Positions 23,265 through 49,370 of a stretch of DNA of 64,000 bases are shown in pieces (within the stretch, counting starts at the first letter, position 1; the number at the start of each line of letters is the position of its first letter). Location: contig MCFE01000132.1 of assembly GCA_002104905.1 (NCBI GenBank), positions 62,001 to 126,000 of the forward strand, written 5' to 3'. This DNA is from Basidiobolus meristosporus CBS 931.73 (lineage: Eukaryota; Fungi; Basidiobolomycota). The notes below the pieces were generated by a model that saw nothing but the letters and a program-made list of their open reading frames with translations, searched no databases and had not been told where the DNA came from. A program made the position numbers and the translations under genes.

Positions 23265-24317
23265 TGTAGTGGGGTGACAGTGACACCCACTGACAGATGT
23301 GCTCATTCCCTCATTTTCTACTATCCTATATCTCTACTACATTTATTTTAGTTTTATCCCATTTGTCTTACCTGATCAGTACTATCTCATAAGCCAGTTG
23401 ACTATCACACCTGCTTACCTTATTGCATAAGTTACCCCTCACTCTATGTAAGATTACTAGCTATAAGTGCTTCTATATTAGGCAAATACCCATGCCAGTA
23501 CCCATGTCACCATCTCTACCACTTCCATACCATATATGGTATCCCCATGTTACACAGGTATTGGAATACTGATTCCTGATTGGTTGGATGTGCTGTGCCT
23601 CTTAGAACATTCCAGCACCTACTTAGAACATTCTTAGGTCATTCTGATGTCATTAAGATTTCTATTGATATCCAGAACCTTCCAGAACACCATGATTAGT
23701 AATCACTTAGGCAGTAAGAAAAGTATATCAGGGCGGCTATCCCTCAACAATAAATCATCATCCCTTTTATCAATATTCTGACTTGTTGATTAGTGTGATC
23801 ACTGCTACCTGCAGCTACCTGAACTTCCAACCCCAGACCACAGGACACTCCCAGGAAACCGCATTGACAGCCAACTGACCTTGGAGGTACTACTTGTGAG
23901 GAATACTCAGAGTAGGTATCTTTTATTATATTTGATTCTTTCCCAAGTTTGTTCTTGTACAAGCAAAGATACTTTTCTGTCTTTGTAACTATTGACCACA
24001 GCTGCATTCTTATCAAGTCCCTGCTGGTGGAGTTTACAGTTGTTTTGACTTTGGAAGCTCTAGTACATTGTCATCTCAAAGGATGCTGAATCCAGTACAT
24101 ACTTTTGTTAAGACACCAACTAAGTTGGGGATTGTAGCTCAACAGTTTTCCCTTGACAAGCTTGTGGCTTTGTTCCCCTTCACATTAGATTAGAGACAGA
24201 ACCCAAGTATTCCTAGCAAGCTTTTGCCAGAGGTTATTGCACCCAGTGAACACCCCACACACAATACACTTGAGAAGTGTTGGACATATCTCTCCCTTGG
24301 ACCTATACACCACCACA
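23265..24317 (+). repeat. Solo LTR of family B
   Basis: TGTAGTGGGG...ACACCACCACA is reverse-complement homologous to 14941-16011. The flanks CCAG and GTGC do not form a TSD. Confidence 0.9.
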
Positions 24318-25200: not shown

Positions 25201-25955
25201 TTCAGTAAACTTTGTTTATACTTTTTTGATCAAGTTGAATAAGTAAGCACCAAGAGACTGGACTAATTGAAATCAGTTTGGATGTTGATAGGCACATAAG
25301 ATATATGAAAATTGCATCATTAATCAGCTGATGTCTTGGCAATTGCTAAGTGGTTGGATAGATCTCAGATGACTAATCACTTGGGAAGGCTTAGCAGATG
25401 AGATGGGGATGTAATGACCAGATGAAAATCAATAAGGTGTGACAGCTAGAAATAGATTCTGAGAAGTGATAAAATAAGCCATAACTGGAATCAGTTATGT
25501 TTGGGTTAGGGAAAATCAGTTAGGGTACTAGATTTTCTTACAGAGTAAAATTGGCTAAGTCTTAAATATTAATGCACAACAGCTGTTACAAAGCCATTAT
25601 AAACTTGCCATAAGATAGTTTAAACACCACCAAGTCTATTCTTATACTAGGCAGTCTAATAATCAAAACACTGCCACAATCCCATCATGACATTGTTGAA
25701 AAGGTTAGGAATTCCCAGCTCCTGGCATTCTTACAGCCTCATTGCATGATCTTGATAGTTGATCCTGATTAGATCCACCTGTGGGACCAAATTATTTTTC
25801 ATAAGGAAGTATGCTAGTTGCAGCAGTTATTCATGTATTTGACAACTAATAAGCAGTAGGCAATAGCACTTAGGAACAAAACTAGCTGTAAGAAGGCACC
25901 TGGGTATTTACTACAATAGTGGAGCAAAAGTCTAACACTTGATCTTCTTCAAAAT

Positions 25956-26280
25956 ATGTCTGTTGAGTATACATCCCCTCTGTTTGTAATTTGGCCCATT
26001 AGTTTGATCTTCTTCTAATCCTCAGCTAACATACAAATTCTAAGTTGGCATGACTTACTCTAGCTGCAGTGGTGCCCTCAACATGGTTCTCACCAAGCTC
26101 AACGGTAACTGGCACATCTAGAAGCGAAACAATGTACTCGATAGGCACTAACCACCTTCCGTATTTCTCTTAGGCGTTACAAAAGTGGAGATTTCCTTGG
26201 GGCAACAGCTCGTTGTTGTTCAAGGGACCATTTCTCAGGAGGAGATCGCGAGCACCATCAAGAAAACCACTCCGCAGTGA
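25956..26280 (+). pseudogene. ATX1: ATX1-like copper chaperone pseudogene
   Basis: Collinear with 32341-32684. The first donor site is damaged, there is a CAA>TAA stop at 26041, the metal motif MTCSGC has become MTYSSC, the 3' end has a small deletion, and the TATA box is altered (ctgtaagaag). Confidence 0.85.
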
Positions 26281-27465
26281 AAATTGAGAGCGCATTTTGC
26301 GGTGACTCTCAGCATCGACCAGATACCTTCCTAATTACCTTGTACAACTGGCGATTTGGCAGTTTGATGGCCGAACCCTACGATTAACTACTCTACACTT
26401 AGCTGATGATGATAATAAAATTATTGCATGATAATTTAGTGTTTCGATGTCCTCAGTACAGCTTTCACTATGACATGTTTGTCCTGATTACAGCCGTTAG
26501 TTGCGGTAGAATCTTCGTAAGGGGATGCAGGGAGGCTAGAGACTCGTACCAGTGCTCACCATCTTCCATATTTCACGTACCAGTGCTCGCCATCTTCCAT
26601 ATTTCAAATACCGGTCAAAATGTCAGAGATCTATCCATGGTATGGCAAGTATGCCCGGTGAAGTGCAATCATGAGCGAACAAACCGGTAAAAGAGCATTC
26701 GGATGAAACAGTTTCCCACCTGGGGGTACCGACCAGTTCGCCCATCAAGCCTGGAAATAATTCAGATCGTCTGACAAGATCCCACCACAAGTATAGAAAT
26801 GATCGACCCCAACCAGAAGTACGCATTATGTCAGGATAAAGGTTTCCTCTACGGAAATTGATAGAGTCGGATCATCCCAGTTACTTGTCTCATCCAAGAA
26901 AATACCTGATATTTTACAGGCTCTTTCGACATAAAGCTTAGCTGACTCTGGTTTCAACTTGGTCGCATCAAATCATGATTTAGGAAGGTGAGAATCCCCT
27001 AATAGTAAGGTAACAATGCTGAGAATATTGATTGGTCTCTGTATGGTAAACACCTACTTGGCACCTCCAGAGCTCAAACCAATTCACCAAATTGTGGCCT
27101 GATAAGAACTCATAAACGTACTGACGAGATCGTGCAACATAATGTGCTGACCGGGGAAGTGACTAGTCCACGCATGACGTTCCCAGGTGACTTCCACCCA
27201 AAACATCATGAAAGGTGCTCACTTAATAGCAACGATAATGGCTAGTCTTCATATATGAATCCTACAGATCGAAGTCCTAGATGATGTAAATGTTAATTTC
27301 TAGCCAATTGCTCCAGAGAAGTAAATATTGAGGCATGCCGTTCCGAGTGAGGCTACCCCACATGTATTACGCCCAGCCTTCTGCACCATGCCAAATGAAC
27401 TAAAATGGCAATCTGGAATATTTCACATCAAGTGATGGAATGGTACACACGCATGTACTCCCGAA

Positions 27466-27482
27466 ATATGGAAATGATCAGC
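27466..27482 (+). promoter_or_regulatory. Candidate subtilisin promoter motif TGGAAnnGATC (first of seven positional copies)
   Basis: Found 280-380 bp upstream of every subtilisin ATG: 27466, 29605, 33831, 35739, 40458, 42635 and 44595. Confidence 0.45.
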
Positions 27483-27789
27483 GAGTATTCCCATAGAGAC
27501 AGGATCCGCTGCATGCTTTGAAAAGAGCTTGATTATCACATAGGCACACATATGGCTAAGAGTTGTTGCATATTCACAAAGGGTAGACCTGTGTGGAGCT
27601 CGTATGTTCTGGAGAAATCTCATTGTTGTTACATGATTTACTTGACGCGTAATAGGAGCCGTGGCTGAAATTACAGTATGAACCATATACCATGAGACGG
27701 TTTATGAGAAATACTTGGGCATTAAGGACTATAAAAGGTGCCGAAAAAACATGAAGTCAATCAACACGTAGCTTTACTGCTTTATAGTC

Positions 27790-29053
27790 ATGGTCAATTT
27801 CCGCACTTTTACCTTAGGCTACCTAGTAGCCATTCTCTTGACTGCCCAACTGACCGAGGCTCAAATTGTCGACGTCTCCAACAAGTACATCGTTAAGATC
27901 AAGGAAGGTGCTGACTCCAACAAAGGTAGGAATGCAAGATCGTGGCATGATTGACATGCGAGGACCATCTAACCAATACCTATCATTGCTTACTGTAGTT
28001 GACCAATTCCTGAAGACCAAGCTTGACCAGTACAACCGCGGTCGCAGCGGTAACAATGGCCTGAAGAATGAGCTCAAGAGCAAGTTCTCGTTGGAGAGCT
28101 TCAACGCCTATGCCGGCACTCTCAGTCAAGGCTTGGTCTCCGAGCTCAAGGCTCATGGAGATGTTGAGTATGTCGAGGCTGAGCAAGTGTTCACCATCTC
28201 CGGTGTTCAGACTAACCCACCAAGCTGGGGACTGCCAAGAATCTCTCAGCGTGCTCGTGACACCAGTGCCCCTTACAACTACCCCAACTCAGCCGGCGAG
28301 GGTGTGGATGTGTACATCATTGATACTGGCATCAATGTCAAGCACACCGACCTCGGTGGTAGAGCCACCCTCCCCGTGAGCTTCATCACTGGTGAGGCCA
28401 CTGACGACCTCAATGGCCATGGCACTCATGTGTCAGGTACTGTTGGCGGCAACACCTATGGTGTGGCCAAGAAGGCCAAGCTCATCGGAGTCAAGGTGCT
28501 GAGCGGTAGTGGAAGTGGCACCACCTCGGGTGTCATCTCAGGAGTCAACTGGGTTGCTGAGCAAGCCAAGAAGAGTGGCCGTAAGAGTGTCGCCAACATG
28601 TCACTCGGCGGTGGCAACAGTGAGGCACTGAAGCAGGCTGTCAATGCTGCTGTCCAAGCTGGTGTCACCTTCATTGTTGCCGCTGGTAATGAGAGCCAAG
28701 ATGCCTGCAACGTCTCCCCCGCCAACGCCGCTCAAGCATTCGCTGTTGGGGCCACCACCATCTCTGACACCCTGGCCAGCTTCAGCAACTACGGCAAGTG
28801 CGTGAAGATCTTGGCCCCGGGCCAGGACATCACCTCTGCCTGGATTGGAGGCACCAGCGCATCCAAGAAGATCTCTGGCACCAGTATGGCTAGTCCACAT
28901 GTTGCAGGTGTTGCTGCGTTGTACTTGTCGCAAGGTGGATTGAACACCCCAGCCGAAGTCTACACTGCACTCCAATCCAAGGCCACCAAAGACGCCATTA
29001 CCGGATTGAAGGGAACTACCCCTAACCTATTGGTATTCAACTCCAACCAGTAA
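27790..29053 (+). CDS. Secreted subtilisin (S8A, proteinase K-like), copy S1; exons 27790-27925 and 27999-29053, 396 aa
   Basis: Signal peptide MVNFRTFTLGYLVAILLTAQLTEAQ, a 73-nt GT-AG intron with a CTAAC branch site, an I9-like prodomain, and the triad IIDTG / NGHGTH / GTSMASPHVAG. TATA at about 27730. Confidence 0.95.
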
Positions 29054-29981
29054 AGGATCGAATAACCATAGTATGATATACGCAAGATTGAATAAAGTCA
29101 TCACATTATCTACCATAATTAAAATTTATGGAACCAAGACTAAAGACATATTGTGACTTGCAATAATGAGACAAGAAATGGCTACGCCACAAGTGCGACG
29201 ATAATCCAATTTAGCTGGTCGCTGAAAATTTCCAGTAGTGTGGTGAGGTACGGAGTTTGGGAGAGAAATGGATTGGTTGGATAGGGCTCCCAATAAATTC
29301 GTCATATCGGCATCCTGCGAGCAATAATAACATATGAGAAAAACTGATTGTCAGTCTGGTGGCATCGGGGGAAATTCAGGTGTTCTTTCCCGATATGTGG
29401 ACAAGATCGACAATCGTATTGCATATTTAGTGCCAGAACAGGTGGATTTCTTGATTTGGGTATGTTTATTTAAAATTTACCATGATCACGGATATTCTGT
29501 GGGAAGCCCGGTCTATGGAAGCTTTACTCCCAGCATTCCTTAAAATGGAAATCTACGTGAATTAGCCAGACTAGTAAAATGGTATATTCACAATCTTGCT
29601 CAGAGTATGGAAATGATCGGCAGGCAATCAAGGAGACGCATCAACATGTTCTATCAGCGTACTCGATGGCCAAGAGCAGGTGACCATGGCAATTTTTAAG
29701 ATCCTAAAATACGACAGTATTCTGTACAGGTTTTTTGGTGCATAAGACGACTTGATATATCCAAGAGGATCATTCATGAGAGAAATGCTGCACATCCTGT
29801 CGAAATCTATCTTGATTTCCGATAACCGTAAACATGGAGGTTTCCAAGGCACGAAAGTCCACGGTAGTATTGGTATTGTAGTTAAATTCAAAGTATAGAG
29901 CCTGGAATAAATTATTTTGCTATAAAAGAGAGCGGCGGAATGTTAAAAAGCACAATCATTTCTTGAAGTGTCTACTACAAT

Positions 29982-31245
29982 ATGGTCGGTTTCCGCACAC
30001 TCACATTCGGCTCCCTGGTCGCCATTCTCTTGACTGCCCAGCTAACCGAAGCTCAAATTGTCGATGTCTCCAACAAGTACATCGTCAAGATCAAGGAAGG
30101 TGCTGACTCCAACAAAGGTAGGAATGCAAGATCGTGGCATGATTGACATACGAGGATGGTCTAACCAATGCCTGCCGTTGCTTACTGTAGTTGACCAATT
30201 CCTGAAGACCAAGCTTGACCAGTACAACCGCGGTCGCAGCGGTAACAATGGCCTGAAGAATGAGCTCAAGAGCAAGTTCTCGTTGGAGAGCTTCAACGCC
30301 TATGCCGGCACTCTCAGTCAAGGCTTGGTCTCCGAGCTCAAGGCTCACGGGGATGTTGAGTATGTCGAGGCTGAGCAAGTGTTCACCATCTCCGGTGTTC
30401 AGACTAACCCACCAAGCTGGGGACTGCCAAGAATCTCTCAGCGCGCTCGTGACACCAGTGCCCCTTACAACTACCCCGACTCAGCTGGCGAGGGTGTGGA
30501 TGTGTACATCATTGATACTGGCATCAATGTCAAGCACACTGACCTCGGTGGTAGAGCCACCCTCCCCGTGAGCTTCATCACTGGTGAGGCCACCGACGAC
30601 CTCAATGGCCATGGCACTCATGTGTCAGGTACTGTTGGCGGCAATACCTATGGTGTGGCCAAGAAGGCCAAGCTCATCGGAGTCAAGGTGCTGAGCGGTA
30701 GTGGAAGTGGCACCACCTCGGGTGTCATCTCAGGAGTCAACTGGGTTGCCGAGCAAGCCAAGAAGAGTGGCCGTAAGAGTGTCGCCAACATGTCGCTCGG
30801 CGGTGGCAACAGTGAGGCACTGAAGCAGGCAGTCAATGCTGCTGTCCAAGCTGGTGTCACCTTCATTGTTGCCGCTGGTAATGAGAGCCAAGATGCCTGC
30901 AACGTCTCCCCCGCCAACGCCGCTCAAGCATTCGCTGTTGGGGCCACCACCATCTCTGACACTCTGGCCAGCTTCAGCAACTACGGCAAGTGCGTGAAGA
31001 TCTTGGCCCCGGGCCAGGACATCACCTCTGCCTGGATTGGAGGCACCAACGCATCTAAGAAGATCTCTGGCACCAGTATGGCTAGTCCACATGTTGCTGG
31101 TGTTGCTGCGTTGTACTTGTCGCAAGGTGGATTGAACACCCCAGCCGAAGTCTACACCGCACTCCAATCCAAGGCCACCAAAGACGCCATTACCGGATTG
31201 AAGGGCACCACCCCTAACCTATTGGTATTCAACTCCAATCAGTAA
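29982..31245 (+). CDS. Secreted subtilisin S8A, copy S2 (2 exons, 396 aa)
   Basis: Same 1264-bp structure and intact triad. TATA at about 29921, AATAAA downstream. Confidence 0.95.
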
Positions 31246-32340
31246 ATCACTCATCACTTTTGTCATCGTTCAGATGCAAATAAAAGTATCCGGTTAAATA
31301 TTAACGTGTTCATATATATATATATATATTGATAGAGGCACGCAGACCTAGTTTTATGAAATTGCCCCTGGCGACATTTGTTGACACACATATCATCTAA
31401 GAATGGAACTTATTTTACTAGTTTTGTTTACACCATGCGTAAATAAGGCGCTGGATTGCTCATGATCCATGATAATAAAATTCGAATTATTTTGTTTGAA
31501 CCATTTCGCAGGTGACATCTCACTTGGCTGCATCAAATTTCTTCAGGTTCGAAGAAATAAGCAATCACATATAGGAAGCCATTTTTCTGTCCAGATAGTA
31601 ATATATAAACCGGGGATTTCGTATTTTGAATCCCAAACAGTGGTTTATTCTAAGGTTAAAGCCTCATCGGAGCACCTTACAATAAGTAGAAATTGTTCAT
31701 TGATGAGTAATTCAGCGTATGGCTTTCAACAATTTTCCCAAGTTCTCATTGCTATTCAAAATATGATAAATTGCTGGATATTATTCTACTGAAGTGTCGG
31801 ACCATTTGGTCAGATTCGGATTTGGCAAGGATCGCCACAATTTAATATAAGGTTAGTACGAGTTTTTTGAAAAACCAAAATAACATCTTGAAGAGCAGAC
31901 TTGAGAGATCTCATTCACTTCATTGGACCTCACACATCTTTTCTATGAGGTCAGGATTATTTGAGTACAGTCGGACCATTTGGTCCGATTGGGATAATCT
32001 ACTTGCAAGTTGATCATCGATTAGTGCGGATGATCAAGTTATCTCGGTATTCCAATCAATCAGTAATTGGAAGTTTTAACGCTGATTGATCAGCAGTGAA
32101 TATTTATCCGAAGTTTTCAGGAAGATGGTTTTTGAAATCAACGCTGGGCCATGCCCAATAGCGTAAATCACGCACCAAAATCCCAGTTTCTCGCTTGGTC
32201 CAACGAAAAGCAGTGGTTGTTAATCATCGCTCTGACAACTATGGAAGCTGTATGGAATGTATTGAATTCACTATAAAAAGGCACTCGTGGGTCCACCAAA
32301 ATGGCAGAACACAAGCCTAACACTTCATCTACTTCGCAAT

Positions 32341-32684
32341 ATGGCCGGATCGGTGAGTACACATGCCCACTCTATTCGTAATTCAATACAGTGGTCTGAT
32401 CTTCATCTAATCCCCAGCAAACATACAAATTCCAAGTTGGCATGACCTGCTCTGGTTGCACTGGTGCTGTCAACAGGGTTCTCACCAAGCTCAACGGTAA
32501 CTGGCACATCTAGAAGCGAAACAATGTACTCGATAGGCACTAACCACCTTCCGTATTTCTCTTAGGCGTTACAAAAGTGGAGATTTCCTTGGAGCAACAG
32601 CTCGTTGTTGTTGAAGGGACCGCTTCTCAGGAGGAGATCATGAACACCATCAAGAAAACTGGCAAATCCGTGACTCTGCTGTGA
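32341..32684 (+). CDS. ATX1: ATX1 copper chaperone (HMA domain); exons 32341-32352, 32418-32496, 32566-32684; 69 aa
   Basis: The spliced product is MAGSQTYKFQVGMTCSGCTGAVNRVLTKLNGVTKVEISLEQQLVVVEGTASQEEIMNTIKKTGKSVTLL. It has the MTCSGC motif and the C-terminal IKKTGK as in yeast Atx1. Introns are GT-AG with CTAAY branch sites; TATA at about 32272. Confidence 0.93.
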
Positions 32685-34112
32685 ATATTGGGAGCGCATT
32701 TTGCGGTGGACTCTCAGCATCGACCAGATACCTTCCTCACTGCCCTGTACAATTGTCGATTTGGCAGTTTGATGGCCGAACCCTATGATTAACTACTCTA
32801 CATTTAGCTGACTACGATAATAAAATATTTGCATGTTAATTTAGTGTTTCGATGTCCTCCGTGCAGCTTTTACTATTCATTCACTATGACATTTTTGTCC
32901 TGATTACAGCCGTTTGTTGCGGTAGAACTTTCGTCAGGGGATGCAGGGAGGCTAGAGACTCGTACCAGTGCTCACCATCTTCCATATTTCAAATACCGGT
33001 CAAAATGTCAGAGGTCTGTCCATGGTATGGTAAGTATGCACGGTAAAGTGCAATCATGAGCGAACAAACCGGCAAAAGAGCATTCGGATGAAACAGTTTC
33101 CCATTTGTGATCATCAGGCCTAGAAGTGGTTCAAATTGTTGCTGGCAAGTTCATACCGCCAATATAAAAATAACCGATCCCAATTACTGGATTCCAAGTC
33201 TCTCATTTCAACTTCGTCCTCTTGAACCGTAACTTAGGCGGGTGAGAATTCACTAGTAGGAAGGTGATATTGCTGCGAATATTGATTGGTCTGGGTAAAC
33301 GTGAAAATGCCCCGTATTTGCAAACACATACTTGCCATCTCCAGAGCTCAAGCCAATTTACCATATTGAGGCCTAATAAGAACTCATAAACTTACCGGTG
33401 AGATCGGGGTCTCATACAACATAACATACTTACCGGAGAAACCGTCAATCTCTAGCAAAGACTAGTTCACAAGTGGCTCCCCCGGTAATATACCTTCCAC
33501 TCAAAATACCATGATAGGGGTTCACTTGATACCAACGATTGTGACTGGTCTTCATATCTAGATCCTAGAGATCGAAGGAAATTCTTAGATGGTGCAAATG
33601 GTAATTTCGGCTGACGATCTAACCAATTACTCCAAAGAAGTAAAAATTGAAGCATGCCGTTCTGAGCGAGGCTACCCTACATGTATTAGAATGTTGCTCC
33701 GAGTGAGGTTACTCAACATGTATAACGCCCAGTCTTATGTAGCATGCCAAAGCAACTACAATGGTAATCAATGATATTTCTCATCAAGGGATGGAATGAT
33801 GCACACAATATTCACACATGCATTCCCGAAATATGGAAAAGATCATCGAGTGTTCCCATAGAGACAGGATCCGATTGATAGCAACATAGGTACATATATG
33901 GCTAAGAGTCATCGCATATTCGCAAAGGGATAAAGCTGGACGGAGTCCACATGACCTTGAGAAGTCGCATTGTTGTTGCATCATTTACACAATGCGTAAT
34001 ATGAACCATATAACATGAAGCGGGTGATGAGAATTATTTGGGCATCAAGGACTATAAAAGGTGACGAAAAAACATGAATTCAATCAACTAATAGCTTTAC
34101 TGCTTAATCGCC

Positions 34113-35376
34113 ATGGTCAATCTCCGCACTTTTACCTTAGGCTCCCTTGTCGCCATTCTCTTGACTGTCCAGCTAACCGAGGCTCAAATTGTCGACGTCT
34201 CCAACAAGTACATCGTCAAGATCAAAGAAGGTGCTGACTCCAACAAAGGTAGGAATGCAAGATCGTGGCATGATTGACATAGCAGGACCGTCTAACCAAT
34301 ACCTGCCGTTGCTCACTGTAGTTGACCAATTCCTGAAGACCAAGCTTGACCAGTACAACCGCGGTCGCAGTAGTAACAATGGCCTGAAGAATGAGCTCAA
34401 GAGCAAGTTCTCGTTGGAGAGCTTCAACGCCTATGCCGGCACCCTCAGTCAAGGCTTGGTCTCCGAGCTCAAGGCTCATGGAGATGTTGAGTATGTCGAG
34501 GCTGAGCAAGTGTTCACCATCTCCGGTGTTCAGACTAACCCGCCAAGCTGGGGACTGCCAAGAATCTCTCAGCGTGCTCGTGACACCAGTGCCCCTTACA
34601 ACTACCCCGACTCAGCCGGGGAGGGTGTGGATGTGTACATCATTGATACTGGCATCAATGTCAAGCACACCGACCTCGGTGGTAGAGCCACCCTCCCCGT
34701 GAGCTTCATCACTGGTGAGGCCACTGACGACCTCAATGGCCATGGCACTCATGTGTCAGGTACTGTTGGCGGCAACACCTATGGTGTGGCCAAGAAGGCC
34801 AAGCTCATCGGAGTCAAGGTGCTGAGTGGTAGTGGAAGTGGCACCACCTCGGGAGTCATCTCAGGAGTCAACTGGGTTGCCGAGCAAGCCAAGAAGAGTG
34901 GCCGTAAGAGTGTCGCCAACATGTCGCTCGGCGGTGGCAACAGCGAGGCACTGAAGCAGGCTGTCAATGCTGCTGTCCAAGCTGGTGTCACCTTCATTGT
35001 TGCCGCTGGTAATGAGAGCCAAGATGCCTGCAACGTCTCCCCCGCCAACGCCGCTCAAGCATTCGCTGTTGGGGCCACCACCATCTCTGACACTCTGGCC
35101 AGCTTCAGCAACTACGGCAAATGTGTGAAGATCTTGGCCCCAGGCCAGGACATCACTTCTGCATGGATCGGAGGCACCAGCGCATCCAAGAAGATCTCTG
35201 GCACCAGTATGGCTAGTCCACATGTTGCTGGTGTTGCTGCGTTGTACTTGTCGCAAGGTGGATTGAACACCCCAGCCGAAGTCTACACTGCACTCCAATC
35301 CAAGGCCACCAAAGACGCCATTACCGGATTGAAGGGAACTACCCCTAACCTATTGGTATTCAACTCCAACCAGTAA
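34113..35376 (+). CDS. Secreted subtilisin S8A, copy S3 (2 exons, 396 aa)
   Basis: Same 1264-bp structure and intact triad; TATA at about 34052. Confidence 0.95.
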
Positions 35377-36100
35377 ATCAAGTGGTACCGAATACCGGTA
35401 CATTCCTATGTCACGATCACGTATAGGCGAATAAAGTCACGATACCTTCATTACTAAGAAATTATGGCATCACCCGTCGTGGTAATTTGATGTATTTGGT
35501 AATTTTTACGACTGCTAGTACCAGGAATATGGATGTATTTCGATTTCGCAGTTGGAATTTTTGATCATTCTGAGTGGAACGGCATTCGGGTAGGAAAGAA
35601 AAATGGCTGGGATCACAAGCACAATCTAAAATTGCGCCATTTTGGCACTTCGCATGCAAAACGGTATATAAGGAAAGCTGTTGGATGGTGCCATAACCAC
35701 ATTGATTGTTTCTGTGAAAATGTTCACGCCCACTCCTGATATGTGGAAAGGATCAGCAATCGTTCGTTCGTGTGCTGATCGATACTATATTGGCCATTGA
35801 CTTCCACTTGATACGTTTTTCTCAAAGCTTCTGAAATGGGAGTATTCCTGTTTACTACAAATGCACACACTTATACTGCACATATCAAGTGATGGCCGAA
35901 TACCTGTAATCACCGACTGGCTTGAAGTATGATAATCAGTCTAGTGCCGTCATTACTTGCCGTGTGAAAGCATTATCAAGGTCACGATATATGTTGACGG
36001 ACATTATTACAACTCAATAAACCATGGGTTTGAAAAGGCTATATAAGAGGCTAATGAGCCATTACCTAACGATATCAATACCGCCGAAAATCAATCTACC

Positions 36101-37364
36101 ATGGTCAACTTCCGCACTTTCACTTTGGGCTCTCTGGTTGCCATTCTTCTGACTGCGCAACTTACTGAGGCTCAAATCGTCGACGTCTCCAACAAGTACA
36201 TCGTCAAGATCAAGGAAGGTGCTGACTCCAACAAAGGTAGGAATGCAAGATCGTGGCATGATTGACATGGCAGGACCGTCTAACCAATACCTGCCGTTGC
36301 TCACTGTAGTTGACCAATTCCTGAAGACCAAGCTTGACCAGTACAACCGTGGTCGCAGTGGTAACAATGGCCTGAAGAATGAGCTCAAGAGCAAGTTCTC
36401 GTTGGAGAGCTTCAACGCCTATGCCGGCACCCTCAGTCAAGGCTTGGTCTCCGAGCTCAAGGCTCATGGAGATGTTGAGTATGTCGAGGCTGAGCAAGTG
36501 TTCACCATCTCCGGTGTTCAGACTAACCCGCCAAGCTGGGGACTGCCAAGAATCTCTCAGCGTGCTCGTGACACCAGTGCCCCTTACAACTACCCCGACT
36601 CAGCCGGCGAGGGTGTGGATGTGTACATCATTGATACTGGCATCAATGTCAAACACACCGACCTCGGTGGTAGAGCCACCCTCCCCGTGAGCTTCATCAC
36701 TGGTGAGGCCACCGACGACCTCAATGGCCATGGCACTCATGTGTCAGGTACTGTTGGCGGCAACACCTATGGTGTGGCCAAGAAGGCCAAGCTCATCGGA
36801 GTCAAGGTGCTGAGCGGTAGTGGAAGTGGGACCACCTCGGGTGTCATCTCAGGAGTCAACTGGGTTGCCGAGCAAGCCAAGAAGAGTGGCCGTAAGAGTG
36901 TCGCCAACATGTCGCTCGGCGGTGGCAACAGTGAGGCACTGAAGCAGGCAGTCAATGCTGCTGTCCAAGCTGGTGTCACTTTCATTGTTGCCGCTGGTAA
37001 TGAGAGCCAAGATGCCTGCAACGTCTCCCCCGCCAACGCCGCTCAAGCATTCGCTGTTGGGGCCACCACCATCTCTGACACTCTGGCCAGCTTCAGCAAC
37101 TACGGCAAGTGTGTGAAGATCTTGGCCCCAGGCCAGGACATCACTTCTGCATGGATCGGAGGCACCAGCGCATCCAAGAAGATCTCTGGCACCAGTATGG
37201 CTAGTCCACATGTTGCTGGTGTTGCTGCGTTGTACTTATCGCAAGGTGGATTGAACACCCCAGCCGAAGTCTACACTGCACTCCAATCCAAGGCCACCAA
37301 AGACGCCATTACCGGATTGAAGGGAACTACCCCTAACCTATTGGTATTCAATTCCAATCAGTAA
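36101..37364 (+). CDS. Secreted subtilisin S8A, copy S4 (2 exons, 396 aa)
   Basis: Same 1264-bp structure and intact triad; TATA-like ctatataag at about 36040. Confidence 0.95.
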
Positions 37365-38871
37365 ATCACTCAACATTTTTGTTGTCGTTAAGATGAAAAT
37401 AAAAGTATCTGGTTAAATATTAGCGTATATATATATTGATTGAGGCACGTAGTCCAAGTGTTATGAAATCGCTCTTCTTGTGGGGTACCTGTGTTAACTC
37501 ACCTGTCACCCAAGGATAGAACGTATTTTACTAGTTTTGTTTACACCATGCGTAAATAATGAGCCGGATTGCTCATGATCCATAACAATGATAAAAATCG
37601 AATTATTTTTGTTTGAATCTTTTCACGGATGCTATCCACTTAGGAGCATCAAATTTGTTCAGATTCGAGGAAACTAGCAATTAGTTATTGCATGCTAGTT
37701 TGTTGTCCAAATGGAAATATATGAACTGGTGATTTTCATAGCTTGAACCCCAAACACTGGTGTATACTATGGCTAAACCCTTACCAGGGCATCTTGCGAT
37801 TGAGTAAAGATTGATCAACAACCTGAACATAATTAAATGCAGCCATTCCCATCAAATCTATCATATTTTTGATATGATACCTGATTATTATTTCAAGTTC
37901 TGTTTAATCCCTGCTTCGTCTAAGGTACTTTTTTGCAAGGTTTACCTGTTAGCTTGTTGAGATCATTGGACCGTTGCTAATGAGCAAAAAACCAACACTT
38001 AATGCCGGTAGCACGCTATAAATATTACCACGTCAAAAAATCCACTGGACAATATTTTAGCATTCATTCATGTGGCGCAATTAAAGCTCATCTCATTTCT
38101 TGATGAGCATTGATATTACGGAATATATGTCGCGTAGAGGATTCGATGATATTCTGAGAACGCACATCCTCAAAATTCCTACAGGTATCATGCAGCTGCA
38201 ATCCTCACTACCCAATGTGTAAAGGTTGAAGGTAGCATATGAAAAAATAAGTAATAATCAATAATTCTTCGCAGTCAGTCGGGTTGGCTTCCGAACTGTT
38301 CATACGAAATTGTGAAAGCCATACACTACAATACTCCTCAATGTAAACTAAGGTTATTGTGAGTATTTCAAAAGTAATAAAATGCCATCTTGGAAAGCAC
38401 ACTTAAGAGATTTCATTCACTTCAATGGACTTCACGCATCTTTTCTATGAGGTCAGGATTATCCGAGTATAGTCGGACCATTTGGTCCGATTGGGGTAAT
38501 CTACTTGCAAGTTGATCATTGATTAATGCGGATGATCAAGTTATCTCGGTATTCCAATCAATCAGTAACTGAGAGATTCAACGTTGATTGATCAGCAGTG
38601 AATATTTCTGCGAAGTTGTGAGGAAGGTGATTTCAGAAATCCTTGATATCACTGAGCGAATCGCTATTTTCCCTCGAGGCCATGCCCAATAGCGTAAATC
38701 ACGCACAAAAATCCCAGTTTCTCGCTTGGTCCAACGAAAAGCAGTGGTTGTTAATCATCGCTCTGACAACTATGGAAGCTGTATGGAATGTATTGAATTC
38801 ACTATAAAAAGGCACTCGTGGGTCCACCAAAATGGCAGAACACAAGCCTAACACTTCATCTACTTCGCAAT

Positions 38872-39215
38872 ATGGCCGGATCGGTGAGTACACATGCCCA
38901 CTCTATTCGTAATTCAATACAGTGGTCTGATCTTCATCTAATCCCCAGCATACATACAAATTCCAAGTTGGCATGACCTGCTCTGGTTGCACTGGTGCTG
39001 TCAACAGGGTTCTCACCAAGCTCAACGGTAACTGGCACATCTAGAAGCGAAACAATGTACTCGATAGGCACTAACCACCTTCCGTATTTCTCTTAGGCGT
39101 TACAAAAGTGGAGATTTCCTTGGAGCAACAGCTCGTTGTTGTTGAAGGGACCGCTTCTCAGGAGGAGATCATGAACACCATCAAGAAAACTGGCAAAACG
39201 GTGACTCCGCTTTGA
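38872..39215 (+). CDS. ATX1: ATX1 copper chaperone, second intact copy (3 exons, 69 aa)
   Basis: 344-bp span identical in structure to 32341-32684, with MTCSGC intact; the product ends KKTGKTVTPL. Confidence 0.93.
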
Positions 39216-40785
39216 AAACAGAGAGTACATGTTACAATGGACTCTCAGCATCGACCAGATACCTTCCTAATTACCCTGTACAATTGCCCAAATCTCCTGT
39301 TTAAATTTCCAATAAAATGCTTGCATGCTAAATACGAGCTATTGTATCCTCGGTATAATTCCCACACTAGGTTTGCACTGATTGCAGCCATTAGGTACGG
39401 TAAGACCTCACAACTTTGTTGACCGTTCGAACACACGGTCTATGCCCCAAATGAGTCCATGGTACGATTCATGTGGTAACGGTAGGATTTTCAATCCCAT
39501 CATTAAATTGAACATAAAGGATAGGTAGGGGAAATGCCAGAATGGACACAGTGAGAAAAGCGGGGTGGTTTAAGGTTCTTATGTATTTCAAATACCGACC
39601 AAAATTTCGGAAATTTATCAACGTTGAGTATGGAATCAATAATACGGTATATTTGAAATCAAGCGAGAAATCAATGTGGTGGTAAAATCGGGACTTGGGT
39701 GAATTACCTGATGAAACGGTTTCTCACTGGTGGTTACTGACCAGTTCACCCATCAAGCCTGGGTTGGAATCATCGATAGTACGCTCTGATCATCAACGTG
39801 ATTGAGAATTGCCGTCTGAATAGAATCGAACCTTCCCAGTAATCTGTCGCACCTAAAACACCGGAAATAACCCAGTCTTTTTACAGGCTCAGTTGCTTTA
39901 GGTATTCCGTCATAATTGTGGCCGATGGGTGGCTTCAATAATAATTCAGTAAACATCGATCACGTATTATGAGCATATACTTGCCATTCGCAAAGCTCAA
40001 AGGACTCTAGAGCGTGCTGATGATACCACGGTCTTCTACAGTATGATGAACTAATTGGTGAGATTATTAACCTCTGGCACTGATACCACCTTCGCCAAGA
40101 ATGACTGGGTTTCCCAGGTAATATGACTTCAACCCAAAACACCACTTAGTATCCATGATTATGACTGCTTGGCCCATCAAGATCTTAGAGCTGCAAAGCC
40201 AGATGGTTGACAAATTATTTGGTGATATAAGGTACGGCGTGATGGTTAGGATACGGACAAAAATATGATGATTTCGGCCGACAACTGTACTCTGTACTGC
40301 AGAGAAGCTACTTGGGACGCATATCCGGAGTATGGGTATCCTACATGTAACAAGCTCCATCTGCAAAAATATGCCAAATCGACTAAAATGGGAATCAGAA
40401 ATATTTCTCATCAAGTGATGGAATGATGTGCACGATATTCACACATGCATTCCCGAAATATGGAAGCGATCAGCGAGTGTTCCCAGAGATACACGATCCG
40501 ATGCATATTCTGAAAGAGATTGATTTGTACAGAAGCAGATATACGGGTTCTCAAGAGCCACCAATTACTTACAAGTGGTAAACCTGGACAGAGTTCATAT
40601 GATCTAAAGAAATCCCACCATTGCTCATGATTTATCTTATGTTTGATAGAATACCTTAGTAAATATAGAAGATGGAAGTCATATAGCATGGGAATGAGAA
40701 TTATGAGACATATTCATTGTCTATAACACTATAAAAAGTGACAAACAAGCGTGAAGCCAATTAACGAATTACATTACTCACCACT

Positions 40786-42050
40786 ATGGTCAATTTCCGT
40801 ACTTTCACTTTAGGCTCTCTGGTTGCCATTCTCTTGACTGCCCAACTGACCGAAGCTCAAATCGTCGACGTCTCCAACAAGTACATCGTCAAGATCAAGG
40901 AAGGTGCTGACTCCAACAAAGGTAGGAATGCAAGATCGTGGCATGATTGACATGGGAGGACCGTCTAACCAATACCTGCCGTTGCTCACTGTAGTTGACC
41001 AATTCCTGAAGACCAAGCTTGACCAGTACAACCGCGGTCGCAGTGGTAACAATGGCCTGAAGAATGAGCTCAAGAGCAAGTTCTCGTTGGAGAGCTTCAA
41101 CGCCTATGCCGGCACCCTCAGTCAAGGCTTGGTCTCCGAGCTCAAGGCTCATGGAGATGTTGAGTATGTCGAGGCTGAGCAAGTGTTCACCATCTCCGGT
41201 GTTCAGACTAACCCGCCAAGCTGGGGACTGCCAAGAATCTCTCAGCGTGCTCGTGACACCAGTGCCCCTTACAACTACCCCGACTCAGCTGGCGAGGGTG
41301 TGGATGTGTACATCATTGATACTGGCATCAATGTCAAGCACACTGACCTCGGTGGTAGAGCCACCCTCCCCGTGAGCTTCATCACTGGTGAGGCCACCGA
41401 CGACCTCAATGGCCATGGCACTCATGTGTCAGGTACTGTTGGCGGCAACACCTATGGAGTGGCCAAGAAGGCCAAGCTCATCGGAGTCAAGGTGCTGAGC
41501 GGTAGTGGAAGTGGCACCACCTCGGGAGTCATCTCAGGAGTCAACTGGGTTGCCGAGCAAGCCAAGAAGAGTGGCCGTAAGAGTGTCGCCAACATGTCAC
41601 TCGGCGGTGGCAACAGTGAGGCACTGAAGCAGGCTGTCAATGCTGCTGTCCAAGCTGGTGTCACCTTCATTGTTGCCGCTGGTAATGAGAGCCAAGATGC
41701 CTGCAACGTCTCCCCCGCCAACGCCGCTCAAGCATTCGCTGTTGGGGCCACCACCATCTCTGACACTCTGGCCAGCTTCAGCAACTACGGCAAATGTGTG
41801 AAGATCTTGGCCCCAGGCCAGGACATCACTTCTGCCTGGATTGGAGGCACCAACGCATCCAAGAAGATCTCTGGCACCAGTATGGCTAGTCCACATGTTG
41901 CTGGTGTTGCTGCGTTGTACTTGTCGCAAGGTGGATTGAACACCCCAGCCGAAGTCTACACTGCACTCCAATCCAAGGCCACCAAAGACGCCATTACCGG
42001 ATTGAAGGGCACCACTCCCTAATCTATTGGTATTCAACTCCAACCAGTAA
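40786..42050 (+). CDS. Secreted subtilisin S8A, copy S5; a 1-bp insertion near the 3' end (about 42016) removes the last 9 aa as assembled
   Basis: The span is 1265 bp versus 1264 in the other copies. It reads ACC ACT CCC TAA where S6 has ACC ACT CCT AAC and S2 has ACC ACC CCT AAC. The triad is intact. Confidence 0.9.
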
Positions 42051-42968
42051 AGGATCGAGTAATCATAGTATGATATACGTAAGATTGAATAAAGCCACCA
42101 CATTATCTACAATACTTGAAATTTATGGAACAAAGGCAAAAGGCATATTGTGACTTGCTTCAATCAGTTAAGAAATAACAACGCCATAAGTGCGACTATA
42201 ATTCAATCCTATTGTCTCTAGTTGCGGAAAACATCTAGCAATTTGTTGAGGTACGAGGTTTAGGAACGAAATTGGATGGTTGGAATCACAAGGACTCACC
42301 AAAAATTCGACATTTGGGCACTTTACAAGTAATAATATCGTGATAGGGATGTCACTAGGCAGTCAGGTGATATCCAGGTGTATTCAGGAGTTCATTCCGG
42401 ATATGTGGAAAGGATCGACAATGATTTCTGCATATTCAGTGGCAGAACCGGTTGGCTTCTCGATTGCGGGTGGTTCTAGTTTATTTGAAGTTTACCGTAA
42501 TCATGGAAATTCTGTGGGAAAAGTCACATCACGCCATAAATCAATGGAGATGGTAAGCAATGGCAATGTAGATTTCCTTCCGAGCTTCCCCCACGGCGAG
42601 GAATTCGAGAGAATTATTGTGAGATAAGCTCGAAATATGGAAATGATCAGCAGGCATGTGTTTACGTGTCCTATTAACTTGATCAATAACCAAGAGTAGA
42701 TGGCCATGGTAATTTTCAAGATTCCGATGCACGACAGTAAGCCGTACCAGTTTTTTCGTGTATGAGACAACTAGGTAACTCGAAGAAGAGTGATCATGGG
42801 AGAAATATTGCTCTGCATGTCGAGATCACTATTAACTTTGGATTATCAAAGGTAAAGTTCCCAAGGGTACTAAATATATGGTTCATAGAAATATACAATA
42901 TTGCGCACTATAAAAGAGGGCAACCAAGTGTTGAAACGCATCATCATTTTCTGATCTAATATTGTAGT

Positions 42969-44232
42969 ATGGTCAATTTCCGCACTTTCACTTTGGGTTC
43001 TCTGGTTGCCATTCTTCTGACTGCGCAACTTACTGAGGCTCAAATCGTCGACGTCTCCAACAAGTACATCGTCAAGATCAAGGAAGGTGCTGACTCCAAC
43101 AAAGGTAGGAATGCAAGATCGTGGCATGATTGACATGGCAGGACCGTCTAACCAATACCTGCCGTTGCTCACTGTAGTTGACCAATTCCTGAAGACCAAG
43201 CTTGACCAGTACAACCGCGGTCGCAGCGGTAACAATGGCCTGAAGAATGAGCTCAAGAGCAAGTTCTCGTTGGAGAGCTTCAACGCCTATGCCGGCACCC
43301 TCAGTCAAGGCTTGGTCTCCGAGCTCAAGGCTCATGGAGATGTTGAGTATGTCGAGGCTGAGCAAGTGTTCACCATCTCCGGTGTTCAGACTAACCCGCC
43401 AAGCTGGGGACTGCCAAGAATCTCTCAGCGTGCTCGTGACACCAGTGCCCCTTACAACTACCCCGACTCAGCTGGCGAGGGTGTGGATGTGTACATCATT
43501 GATACTGGCATCAATGTCAAGCACACCGACCTCGGTGGTAGAGCCACCCTCCCCGTGAGCTTCATCACTGGTGAGGCCACTGACGACCTCAATGGCCATG
43601 GCACTCATGTGTCAGGTACTGTTGGCGGCAACACCTATGGTGTGGCCAAGAAGGCCAAGCTCATCGGAGTCAAGGTGCTGAGTGGTAGTGGAAGTGGCAC
43701 CACCTCGGGAGTCATCTCAGGAGTCAACTGGGTTGCCGAGCAAGCCAAGAAGAGTGGCCGTAAGAGTGTCGCCAACATGTCGCTCGGCGGTGGCAACAGT
43801 GAGGCACTGAAGCAGGCTGTCAATGCTGCTGTCCAAGCTGGCGTCACCTTCATTGTTGCCGCTGGTAATGAGAGCCAAGATGCCTGCAACGTCTCCCCTG
43901 CCAACGCCGCTCAAGCATTCGCTGTTGGGGCCACCACCATCTCTGACACTCTGGCCAGCTTCAGCAACTACGGCAAGTGCGTGAAGATCTTGGCCCCGGG
44001 CCAGGACATCACTTCTGCCTGGATTGGAGGAACCAACGCATCCAAGAAGATCTCTGGCACCAGTATGGCTAGTCCACATGTTGCTGGTGTTGCTGCGTTG
44101 TACTTGTCGCAAGGTGGATTGAACACTCCAGCCGAAGTCTACACTGCACTCCAATCCAAGGCCACCAAAGACGCCATTACCGGATTGAAGGGCACCACTC
44201 CTAACCTATTGGTATTCAACTCCAACCAGTAA
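42969..44232 (+). CDS. Secreted subtilisin S8A, copy S6 (2 exons, 396 aa)
   Basis: Same 1264-bp structure and intact triad; TATA at about 42909. Confidence 0.95.
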
Positions 44233-44941
44233 ATCAAGCGGTACCGAATACCGGTACATTCCTATGTCACGATCACGTATAGGCGAATAAAGTCACGATA
44301 CCTTCATTACTAAGAAATTATGGCATCACCCGTCGTAGTAATTTGATGTATTTGGTAATTTTTACGACTGCTAGTGCCAGGAATGTGGATGTATTTCGAT
44401 TCCGCAGTTGGAATTTATGATCATTCTGAGTGGAACGGCATTCGGGTAGGAAAGAAAAATGGCTGGGATCACAAGCACAATCTAAAATTGCGCCATTTTG
44501 GCACTTCGCATTCAAAACGGTATATAAGGAAAGCTGTTGGATGGTGCCATAACCACATTGATTGTTTCTGTGAAAATGTTCACGCCCACTCCTGATATGT
44601 GGAAAGGATCAGCAATCGTTCGTTCGTGTGCTGATCGATACTATATTGGCCATTGACTTCCACTTGATACATTTTTCTCAAAGCTTCAGAAATGGGAGTA
44701 TTCCTGTTTACTACAACTGCACATATCAAGTGATGGCCGAATACCTGTAATCACCGACTGGCTTGAAGTATGATAATCAGTCTAGTGCCGTCATTACTTG
44801 CCGTGTGAAAGCATTATCAAAGTCACGATATATGTTGACGGACATTATTACAACTCAATAAACCATGGGTTTGAAAAGGCTATATAAGAGGCTAATGAGC
44901 CATTACCTAACGATATCAATACCGCCGAAAATCAATCTACC

Positions 44942-46205
44942 ATGGTCAACTTCCGCACTTTCACTTTGGGCTCTCTGGTTGCCATTCTTCTGACCGCGCA
45001 ACTTACTGGGGCTCAAATCGTCGACGTCTCCAACAAGTACATCGTCAAGATCAAGGAAGGTGCTGACTCCAACAAAGGTAGGAATGCAAGATCGTGGCAT
45101 GATTGACATGGCAGGACCGTCTAACCAATACCTGCCGTTGCTCACTGTAGTTGACCAATTCCTGAAGACCAAGCTTGACCAGTACAACCGCGGTCGCAGT
45201 GGTAACAATGGCCTGAAGAATGAGCTCAAGAGCAAGTTCTCGTTGGAAAGCTTCAACGCCTATGCCGGCACCCTCAGTCAAGGCTTGGTCTCCGAGCTCA
45301 AGGCTCATGGAGATGTTGAGTATGTCGAGGCTGAGCAAGTGTTCACCATCTCCGGTGTTCAGACTAACCCGCCAAGCTGGGGACTGCCAAGAATCTCTCA
45401 GCGTGCTCGTGACACCAGTGCCCCTTACAACTACCCCGACTCAGCTGGCGAGGGTGTGGATGTGTACATCATTGATACTGGCATCAATGTCAAGCACACC
45501 GACCTCGGTGGTAGAGCCACCCTCCCCGTGAGCTTCATCACTGGTGAGGCCACTGACGACCTCAATGGCCATGGCACTCATGTGTCAGGTACTGTTGGCG
45601 GCAACACCTATGGTGTGGCCAAGAAGGCCAAGCTCATCGGAGTCAAGGTGCTGAGTGGTAGTGGAAGTGGCACCACCTCGGGTGTCATCTCAGGAGTCAA
45701 CTGGGTTGCCGAGCAAGCCAAGAAGAGTGGCCGTAAGAGTGTCGCCAACATGTCGCTCGGCGGTGGCAACAGTGAGGCACTGAAGCAGGCTGTCAATGCT
45801 GCTGTCCAAGCTGGTGTCACCTTCATTGTTGCCGCTGGTAATGAGAGCCAAGATGCCTGCAACGTCTCCCCCGCCAACGCCGCTCAAGCATTCGCTGTTG
45901 GGGCCACCACCATCTCTGACACTCTGGCCAGCTTCAGCAACTACGGCAAGTGCGTGAAGATCTTGGCCCCTGGCCAGGACATCACCTCTGCCTGGATTGG
46001 AGGCACCAACGCATCCAAGAAGATCTCTGGCACCAGTATGGCTAGTCCACATGTTGCTGGTGTTGCTGCGTTGTACTTGTCGCAAGGTGGATTGAACACT
46101 CCAGCCGAAGTCTACACTGCACTCCAATCCAAGGCCACCAAAGACGCCATTACCTGATTGAAGGGCACCACCCCTAATCTATTGGTATTCAATTCCAATC
46201 AATAA
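44942..46205 (+). CDS. Secreted subtilisin S8A, copy S7; GGA>TGA nonsense at 46155 truncates the last 16 aa
   Basis: Same 1264-bp span and intact triad. The premature stop follows KDAIT. Confidence 0.88.
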
Positions 46206-47187: not shown

Positions 47188-49370
47188 TCAAGATCCCACA
47201 TATTTCAATCCAAATAGATATACAGCTCGCTTTGGTCCCAGTCTTCCGGTTCGAAATTTGAAGATATTATACTCAGCAGATAGATGCAGGTATACTTCTT
47301 GTAGCGGAATCATCCGGAAATTTGGTGTACACCTCCTAGCATAGTATAACGTTGATCTGTCCTCAAACTCACTCTCCTTGATGCAGAAACCATGTTGTAT
47401 AAGCGACGACAAACCATTCACAGTGATTTGACTTGTATCACCCAGAATTTCGAAATCCCCATCAAGAAAGGCCCTCACAATGTCTCCCTGGCCCCAGAAT
47501 TGGTCAGTAACATCGAGGATCGCTCGGCACCAGTTTATACACTGTTCTTTGTAGTAGAGCTACGCTCCTCGTATAATCCATCGAAAGAATTCGCTACGCA
47601 TCTCAATCGAATCAACCAACACCTCATGGACCAAGTTGCCGCTCTTTCTAAATCGCGTTTCAGGCTCGTCTTCTTTCATTGTCGGATCGAATAGCTTTTA
47701 TACGTGCCACCACGGCTGGGTCCGGTGATTTCTCGCGCAGCACATTTGTCATGATAACAACCGGCTTCTGGATGCTGAAGGTATCTTTTTTGTATGCCGC
47801 TCGTACGACAGTAGCACCTCGAAAGTCCAAATCCTCTCTCTCGTTCAGTTCGTTAACGATTACGCACCTTACACCCACGATCAGCTGTGAAGTTTGGGCG
47901 TTGATAGCCGAGCGAGTCTTGTTGTACAAGATACATCTGTGGAGATCTGCGACCAGGTTGCTGAGGCTGTAACCAGTTTCATCCTTGACATAATTGGTTT
48001 CTTGTAAATGCTGTTCAATGGTCTTCATCTCCAGGAAATCTCGGATGCTCATTTTGTCGGCTGGATCAACGCATTTGAGCTTGGGCGAAGTGGCATTCAG
48101 ATCACCAACCATGACTGATTTTAACAGACGGCAACAGAGACCCTTACCATTATGTCCAGAGCCATATAGGAGCAAGCTATTGTGAATGTCTGTCCTCCCC
48201 GTTAGACTATATTCAAGGAGCATTTGAACGTTTCTAACAAGCTCACTATAATCAGCAGGCCAGCAATCAGAAAAGAGCACTCTCAAAAAAGATAACCTTG
48301 GCAACGGGGCATCCAAATCAGCTTCGGCAGTGTCTTTGCCTTGCCAAGGGGTATGGACAATTTGAGAGATGTACAAATTCGTAACAGGGCTATGAAGCGC
48401 TCCAGTTTTTAGATACCTAAACTTCTGTGAATTGGTATTCGCGTCTTTTTCTTGGGTAGCGGAGCCTTGGGGCTTGAGGTTGGTTAGGTTGGAACTCGAC
48501 CCAGAGGTGAAGTTTTCTTTTCGTTTCCTTTCCTTTCCATACTAGGCAAGATTGTAAAGTTGCATCCCGTTGATTTGTGATAGACTGGGGAGTGATCGAT
48601 ACCTACCGTGCTCTCAACAGTCATGTGGATATTCACTGACAGAATATCTCTCGCTGTGGTGTGTTGAAAGCAATGAGGTAAGCGGAAGGCCTTCTTTTGG
48701 TTACATACCGAAGAGTCCGGTTGTTTAGTTTCAATAGTAGGTTTGCTTCGGATTCTCCGCAGTCGGCACGTTCAACGATATTGGCCATTGTTTTGTTGAA
48801 AAGTGCATCTTCCTCCTGGATATCACCAAAAACGTAGAGACTATCGCCCCTCACAATATTGGTAACCGTATGCCAGTTACACTTTGCATATCCAGTCGCT
48901 TTGAATGGCTGCTGATTCTTGGACCAGCGCAAGTCAGACGCTTTCACTTCGAAGCCCAAAGATTCGCCGTACTCTTCATTGAACACTTGCAAATTTATGC
49001 TCCGTAATTATTTCACTGAATTTAGCGGCTGGTGTTGCTCCGCGACAAGATCCTCTCCAACACGGTAAACTCCACTCAGGACAACCATGAATACAACCTC
49101 ATGCCAGTCACGTTTCGACTCGTCACCTGCAGCGAAACAAGTGGCAACTGGGGCCTCCTTGACAAACTGTAGGAACGAAGAGATATGTTCGATGACCGCA
49201 TAGTTGGACAGTCCATCCTTTACAATAACCCCTTTCCTTTGCTTCTTCAGCTTTAACGCCTCCAACTGTGGGTTCTCTGCCTCGACTAAGAATCCAACCC
49301 CTCGTCGAAGAAAACCCTTTAGCGCAGTAACCGGCATATCACGCAAATTGCCTGAAGTGAACGGGCACAA
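47188..49370 (-). pseudogene. Decayed D5-type (SF3) primase-helicase gene, intronless, probably of viral/Polinton-like origin
   Basis: D5_N-like LKTGALHSPVTNLYISQI; YSLTG..LLLYGSGHNGKG (Walker A, 48140-48163); GVRCVIVNE (Walker B); VIMTN (motif C). After a frameshift at about 47690 it reads FRWIIRGA*LYYKE..VTDQFWGQGDIVRAFLD and continues to RTGRLGPKRAVYLFGLK*. Upstream ORFs 48633-48992 and 49008-49370 are on the same strand but their identity is unknown. Confidence 0.75.

Follow-up and report, generated by a model that had tools for sequence, protein, structure and literature searches.

ATX1 copper-chaperone genes as probable passengers of a subtilisin protease array in Basidiobolus meristosporus

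Introduction

Basidiobolus is a gut-dwelling fungus able to infect people. The stretch of B. meristosporus CBS 931.73 DNA analysed here (64,000 nt, positions 62,001 to 126,000 of the 158,516-bp contig MCFE01000132.1; hereafter the window) carries seven proteinase-K-type S8 (subtilisin) protease genes, S1 to S7, arranged head-to-tail on the plus strand within 25.8-46.2 kb. Interleaved with them are three copies of ATX1, a gene for a copper chaperone, and the question raised by this locus is why a housekeeping gene should recur inside a protease array. An earlier note, made from the sequence alone, placed the ATX1 copies before S1, S3 and S5 and proposed either hitch-hiking or selected co-dosage as the reason. 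The placement was confirmed by gene models, by matches to the HMA domain and by proteins deposited in GenBank. Of the two explanations it is hitch-hiking that fits the evidence presented below, nothing tested having supported co-dosage or a coupling to copper. The extra ATX1 copies are probably passengers of the protease amplification, carried by hitch-hiking and concerted evolution, rather than parts of a copper-protease module, since one copy is decaying neutrally, the other two bear the marks of gene conversion, another S8 array of this genome was apparently amplified without ATX1, and other tandem arrays are present in the window.

Results and Discussion

Each of the three long spacers of the array, lying before S1, between S2 and S3, and between S4 and S5, contains one three-exon ATX1 copy (Table 1). 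Two of these copies, A2 and A3, are intact and the third, psiA, is a pseudogene. Only two sites in the window encode MTCSGC, a Cu(I)-binding motif of the MxCxxC type, one in A2 (32442) and one in A3 (38973), against a chance expectation of 0.06. In A2 the first exon comprises the ATG and four codons, and the two introns measure 65 nt (32353-32417) and 69 nt (32497-32565, with a CTAAC branch site); A3 has the same gene model shifted by +6531. These models bear out the earlier description of two intact copies that retain MTCSGC, the introns and the TATA box. That the genes are hidden is true of a plain list of open reading frames (ORFs), which misses them, but not of GenBank, where they are annotated as ORX97469.1 and ORX97472.1, the label of the annotated ATX1 genes being 'heavy metal transport/detoxification protein'. 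ORX97472.1 (69 aa, beginning MAGSH) matches A3 exactly and has an identical exon model. A word search with exon 3 returned a cluster of four B. meristosporus CBS 931.73 proteins. Exons were searched separately, and full-length analyses used the database proteins, which agree with the exon translations. GenBank entries for the S proteins of this locus are ORX97467, 97470, 97471, 97473, 97474 and 97475, and accession order on this contig equals gene order (S1, [S2], A2, S3, S4, A3, S5, S6, S7). An out-of-frame ATG is found at 32301-32303 in A2 and at 38832-38834 in A3, 40 nt upstream of the annotated start and 30 nt past the TATA box; depending on the transcription start site, it may begin a possible upstream ORF.

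Table 1. Positions in the window of the ATX1 copies, the S8 protease genes and associated features.
Feature	Position	Strand	Description
Left edge of repeated unit and decayed psiA promoter	25826-25955	+	TATA equivalent at ~25887 mutated
psiA	25956-26280	+	ATX1 pseudogene; ATG at 25956
S1	27790-29053	+	Exon 1 27790-27925, 73-nt intron, exon 2 to stop; ORX97467.1
S2	29982-31245	+	Full-length S8 gene
Conversion tract	32147-32666, paired with 38678-39197	+	520 bp with 2 differences, spanning promoter, introns 1 and 2 and almost all of the coding sequence
A2	32272-32684	+	Intact ATX1; exons 32341-32352, 32418-32496, 32566-32684; ORX97469.1 (partial model)
A2 TATA	32272-32279	+	TATAAAAA at 32272
S3	34113-35376	+	Full-length S8 gene; ORX97470.1
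S4	36101-37364	+	Full-length; ORX97471.1; identical protein also on 14.9-kb contig
A3	38803-39215	+	Intact ATX1; exons 38872-38883, 38949-39027, 39097-39215; ORX97472.1, 69 aa
S5	40786-42022	+	One-base insertion near 3' end, last 9 residues lost; ORX97473.1, 387 aa
S6	42969-44232	+	Full-length; 5' flank S2-type, 3' flank S3-type
S7	44942-46205	+	Premature stop ending 46157, last 16 residues lost; last copy of the array

The 69-aa protein typified by ORX97472.1 aligns end to end with yeast Atx1, its best single-domain match (phmmer, E 1.8e-16), and the alignment includes MTCSGC.GAVN.VLTKL and IKKTGK. Human ATOX1 is likewise aligned over the full length (8.6e-13). Other matches were to CCS (4e-8) and to ATP7B, the last being the sum of six weak domains, and the closest solved relatives of the protein are free chaperones rather than CCS or ATPase domains. 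A single Pfam HMA domain spans residues 9-64 of the 69 (E 5e-16), to which exons 2 and 3 contribute adjoining parts (profile positions 2-24 and 26-61). The lysine loop, aligned with IKKTGK of yeast, is invariant in 6/6 Basidiobolus sequences, and we take the lysine of its KTGK that lies beside the metal site to be the equivalent of yeast Lys65. The AlphaFold2 model (predicted local distance difference test score, 88) has the element order E-H-E-E-H-E, or beta-alpha-beta-beta-alpha-beta, and its top fold matches in the PDB are structures of yeast Atx1 (1cc7, 1fd8 and 3k7r; template modelling score 0.81-0.89, with 54-57% identity in the structural alignment). In sequence and modelled fold the A2/A3 product agrees throughout with the Atx1/ATOX1 metallochaperones, and transfer of Cu(I) to a Ccc2/ATP7-type P1B ATPase is its predicted activity. 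Like yeast Atx1 and human ATOX1 it is a single HMA domain with MTCSGC, KTGK and, by prediction, the same fold; unlike theirs, its gene is multi-copy, embedded in a protease array and accompanied by a pseudogene.

The proteases that surround these genes share one plan, with a TATA-type promoter, a 136-nt exon 1, a 73-nt intron and a large exon 2 in every copy. Exon 1 encodes a hydrophobic N-terminus (MVNFRTFTLG.LVAILLTAQLTEA), assigned by eye as a signal peptide, and the start of an I9 propeptide; Inhibitor_I9 is matched in the S genes, and the full-length GenBank models have PF05922. Exon 2 matches Peptidase_S8 (E 5e-41), and the motifs DTG, HGTH, AAGNE and GTSMASPH, which follow the order of the Asp-His-Ser triad together with the oxyanion Asn, are present in all seven copies. 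Five of the seven are full length, the exceptions being S5 and S7, where the truncations (S5, 40786-42022; S7, 44942-46157) both remove the conserved terminal NLLVFN strand. An S5-like protein from the 14.9-kb contig, ORX64974.1, has a complete C-terminus, which confines the S5 lesion to the S5 copy or to its haplotype.

From the block starts listed in Table 1, the seven S8 genes are 96-98.6% identical to one another, as opposed to 68-79% for homologous spacers. Synonymous divergence (dS) between S genes is 0.03-0.10 and the ratio of non-synonymous to synonymous divergence (dN/dS) is 0-0.06. Set against the much lower identity of the spacers, these values suggest that the S genes have been homogenised by conversion and that the enzyme is under strong purifying selection. 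Genes far more alike than their spacers, with the identity reaching into non-coding gene parts, are what concerted evolution would leave, and the array can be read in that way. Coding similarity and flank types disagree among the copies, giving a mosaic pattern, and S6 reads as a chimera of S2-type and S3-type flanking sequence.

The three long spacers are mutually homologous. They belong to a repeat unit of 6.4-6.5 kb that begins at 25826 or 32219, some 120 bp before the ATX1 start codon, and ends about 1 kb past the even-numbered S gene. The arrangement given in the earlier note, [psiA-S1-S2][A-S3-S4][A-S5-S6]-S7, captures the three ATX1-bearing spacers but is too simple for the rest of the array. 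The S1/S2 spacer matches the S5/S6 spacer (68%), and the S3/S4 spacer, unrelated to either, is 96.5% identical to the S6/S7 spacer. As a block, S3-spacer-S4 (34113-37364) is 97.4% identical to S6-spacer-S7 (42969-46205), and homology to the array ends at 46205. Because of this block identity and the S2-type 5' and S3-type 3' flanks of S6, it would appear that S3-S4 was recently copied to the end of the array as S6-S7, by unequal exchange or long conversion, so that the array is not a series of three clean units.

The earlier observation that A2 and A3 are almost identical in more diverged surroundings was upheld, and the identity proved to be sharply bounded. A tract 99.6% identical begins ~190 bp before the ATG and ends 18 nt short of the stop codon, and in 100-column windows its flanks fall to 75-80% upstream and 35-55% downstream. 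The introns show 0/134 differences. Selection on the protein alone would leave introns drifted like the spacers, and the presence of promoter and introns in a tract with such edges therefore points to gene conversion and not to protein-level selection. For the same reason the near-identity of A2 and A3 provides no evidence on selection of the protein, and more generally this pair stands as a warning that near-identity of duplicates, introns included, is no evidence of selection. A dN/dS comparison among the ATX1 copies had been suggested previously; between A2 and A3 it was unusable, with five coding differences (three non-synonymous and two synonymous) being too few. The two copies can be told apart at 32420 (A/T) and by their last six codons.

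In psiA, exon 2 contains an in-frame stop (26041-26043), after which MTYSSC stands for MTCSGC, the first copper cysteine being replaced, and there is also a 12-nt deletion near the 3' end. Coding changes relative to A2 give a ratio of non-synonymous to synonymous differences per site (pN/pS) of 1.15, which marks psiA as a dead copy evolving neutrally. It too is a mosaic, with intron 2 and the adjoining exon ends identical to those of A2/A3 and intron 1 differing at 15/63 aligned bases. Repeat-induced point mutation (RIP) was considered as the cause of the decay and rejected, as C>T and G>A changes (23) are matched by A>G and T>C changes (19); transitions make up 42 of the 66 changes and their directions are evenly split.

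Other loci were sought by a word-based protein search, which misses relatives below ~70% identity and did not return yeast Atx1; adjacency on contigs other than that of the window was read from accession order, the agreement of which with gene order was checked on the window contig only. The B. meristosporus assembly has at least five annotated ATX1-like genes and that of B. ranarum has one, the latter in keeping with the earlier statement that Atx1 is usually single-copy. A 14,898-bp contig carries, in accession order, S, S, S (identical to S4), ATX1 (ORX64973), S and S, and its size and gene order fit a second haplotype of the stretch from S1 to S6. A further ATX1, ORX62498.1, which reads ...NIITKTGK..., is on a 6,045-bp contig. 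The proteins of these two contigs are slightly different, and the contigs appear to represent either a second haplotype or segmental copies of recent origin. Another ATX1-like protein, ORX98395.1 (88% identical), is encoded on a 165,975-bp contig that also holds a paralogous S8 array (94% identity), among whose members ORX98383, 98387, 98392 and 98394 were recognised as S8. By accession order ORX98395.1 directly follows ORX98394 at the edge of that array, which argues that ATX1-S8 adjacency predates the split of the two loci. The paralogous array seems to carry this single annotated ATX1, at its edge, with the protease amplified there without ATX1; amplification of the protease would then need no matching ATX1 copies.

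In B. ranarum, the ATX1 gene (KAK9718037.1, 77% identity) is on a 19.9-kb contig of a fragmented assembly, the contigs of which may break at arrays, and of the 14 close S8 homologues listed, not one maps to a contig of that length. Among 29 metagenome loci (204 kb in all) with genes encoding proteins 34-68% identical to the ATX1 protein, none of them Basidiobolus-like, no S8 gene was found near the ATX1-like gene. A literature search returned no publication combining Atx1 with a subtilisin cluster, in agreement with the earlier remark that none had been described; papers on Basidiobolus and copper were found, none of them on chaperones. Expansions of subtilisin-like serine proteases (SLSP) in Entomophthoromycotina have been reported, with tandem arrangement and copper unmentioned (PMC6169396).

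Taken together, the comparisons suggest the following history, in which both the order of events and the neutrality, or near neutrality, of the extra ATX1 copies are inferred. ATX1 would originally have been the neighbour of a secreted proteinase-K-type protease gene, and unequal crossing-over would have duplicated in tandem a unit of ~6.4 kb, made up of ATX1 and two protease genes, until there were three. Subsequent copy-to-copy gene conversion may have kept the protease coding regions alike, under strong purifying selection, and replaced 520 bp of one ATX1 copy by the sequence of the other, with the spacers meanwhile diverging by ~30%. Function would have been lost in one copy of ATX1, which would now be decaying neutrally, and a more recent event of 3.25 kb would have placed the copy of S3-spacer-S4 at the end of the array. 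At least one intact ATX1 was presumably kept, the cell needing Atx1 to hand Cu(I) to the copper pump of the secretory pathway. The gene models, identities, conversion tract, pseudogene and annotation order on which this account is built are direct observations.

Several points weigh against this account. A2 and A3 are fully intact, with TATA box, splice sites, MTCSGC and KTGK, and are kept so by conversion, as would also be expected if their dosage were useful. Every ATX1 of the genome whose neighbours can be inferred adjoins an S8 array, a pattern that suits an old adjacency or a functional link. The content of the paralogous array rests on accession order and not on DNA that was read, and a word-based search would overlook any further ATX1 in the genome that had diverged more strongly.

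These points lead to the alternatives, the first of which is that ATX1 dosage was selected for its own sake and not in connection with the protease, for instance in supplying copper to a secretory pathway that exports many cuproenzymes, with the array merely supplying the mechanism of duplication. The number of annotated ATX1-like genes in B. meristosporus relative to the one in B. ranarum and the retention of every functional motif by the intact copies speak for such selection; among the five, however, some probably represent the S1-S7 locus in a second haplotype, as judged from the gene order, fitting size and one identical S8 protein of the 14.9-kb contig, and psiA demonstrates that a copy can be lost. 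We regard independent selection of ATX1 dosage as unlikely.

The second alternative, selected co-dosage, holds that ATX1 was kept in step with the protease copies such that proteolysis is coupled to copper handling, whether by supplying copper to secreted cuproenzymes that work alongside the proteases or by buffering copper set free when proteins are digested. Two intact and homogenised ATX1 copies inside the array, and an ATX1 beside the paralogous array as well, are what this proposal would predict, but the ratio is not fixed: here there are two live and one dead ATX1 to seven S8 genes, and at the paralogous array apparently a single annotated ATX1, at the edge. One of the copies is dead and evolves neutrally, and the identity of the other two, extending as it does through the introns, is silent on the protein. 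Proteinase-K-type enzymes, to our knowledge, neither use nor require copper. Mac1-type copper elements (TTTGCKCR) are not enriched in the window, where 2 were found against 7.6 expected, neither of them in an ATX1 or S promoter, and no other copper genes were found among its long ORFs. The absence of S8 genes near the ATX1-like genes of the 29 metagenome loci counts against co-dosage too, and we consider it quite improbable. Much the same low probability attaches to an adaptive variant, according to which extra Atx1 genes are kept in the secreted-protease loci with the highest amplification and the supply of copper to the secretory pathway thereby rises with secretory load. If true, this variant would mean that metal trafficking and extracellular digestion are coupled at the level of the genome, and a real copper link would connect the dosage of secreted enzymes with metal trafficking in a gut fungus; nothing that was tested points there. 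Finally, an assembly artefact, in which the repeated ATX1 and S8 copies are mis-assembled reads of fewer genes, is very improbable: near-identical arrays are indeed hard to assemble and extra short contigs bear the same genes, but the copies differ by 1.4-8%, the spacers are distinct, old and mutually divergent, there is a distinct pseudogene, and S5 and S7 have copy-specific lesions.

Passage of ATX1 with the proteases, the explanation favoured here, is a familiar process in a new example and not a new system, the ATX1 genes being already annotated and fungal S8 expansions known. As in other tandem S8A expansions of fungi, including the paralogous array of this genome and the SLSP of Entomophthoromycotina, the genes encode secreted pre-pro enzymes with a signal peptide, an I9 propeptide and the Asp-His-Ser triad, in head-to-tail copies kept similar by conversion and purifying selection. 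What differs here is that the repeat unit includes a housekeeping gene unrelated to the proteases, which makes a higher-order repeat. Concerted evolution by gene conversion is known from the arrays of ribosomal DNA, histone and globin genes, and the B. meristosporus locus resembles them in the excess of coding over spacer similarity, in a sharp-edged tract with introns and promoter and in mosaic relationships between copies; it differs in that the ATX1 tract would represent a single event between two copies. The locus offers a clean, well-bounded case of a housekeeping gene swept into the tandem amplification of its neighbour, in which three fates of ATX1 (kept, homogenised by conversion and decaying as a pseudogene) can be seen side by side.

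Other features of the window

The long spacers were also searched for further genes. Ten ORFs of 87-147 aa were without a credible Pfam match, and no tRNAs were found there. A putative Kre9_KNH gene at 31469-31792 was rejected, the match being weak (E 0.006) and the frame broken by indels in the homologous spacer. The 238-aa ORF between the S8 array and the glutamate dehydrogenase array described below (47660-48376, minus strand) has no Pfam match at E 0.001.

Retroelements are abundant to the left of the protease/ATX1 array. A Ty3/gypsy-type long terminal repeat (LTR) retrotransposon occupies 8598-16011, with LTRs of 1071 bp at 8836-9906 and 14941-16011 that are 97.7% identical and an extra partial LTR at 8598-8829. 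Between the LTRs, minus-strand ORFs at 10757-14800 and 9988-10722 correspond to reverse transcriptase, RNase H and integrase. At 23261-24317, ~1.5 kb from the left edge of the array, there is a solo LTR of this element in inverted orientation (93-94% identical). Another degraded retroelement is probably represented by 16305-19912, where an ORF at 17590-18837 is enclosed by two repeats (16305-17098 and 19110-19912, 96%) and gives a weak DUF4100 match, as does the polyprotein of the retrotransposon above.

To the right, glutamate dehydrogenase genes, at least five in number, are repeated in tandem from 52243 to 64000 and beyond the edge of the window, in units of ~1.48 kb that are 96-98.7% identical; one of the ORFs in this array, 54638-56068, matches ELFV_dehydrog (E 8e-57). 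The presence of this array and of the LTR retroelements in one window suggests that segmental duplication is frequent here.

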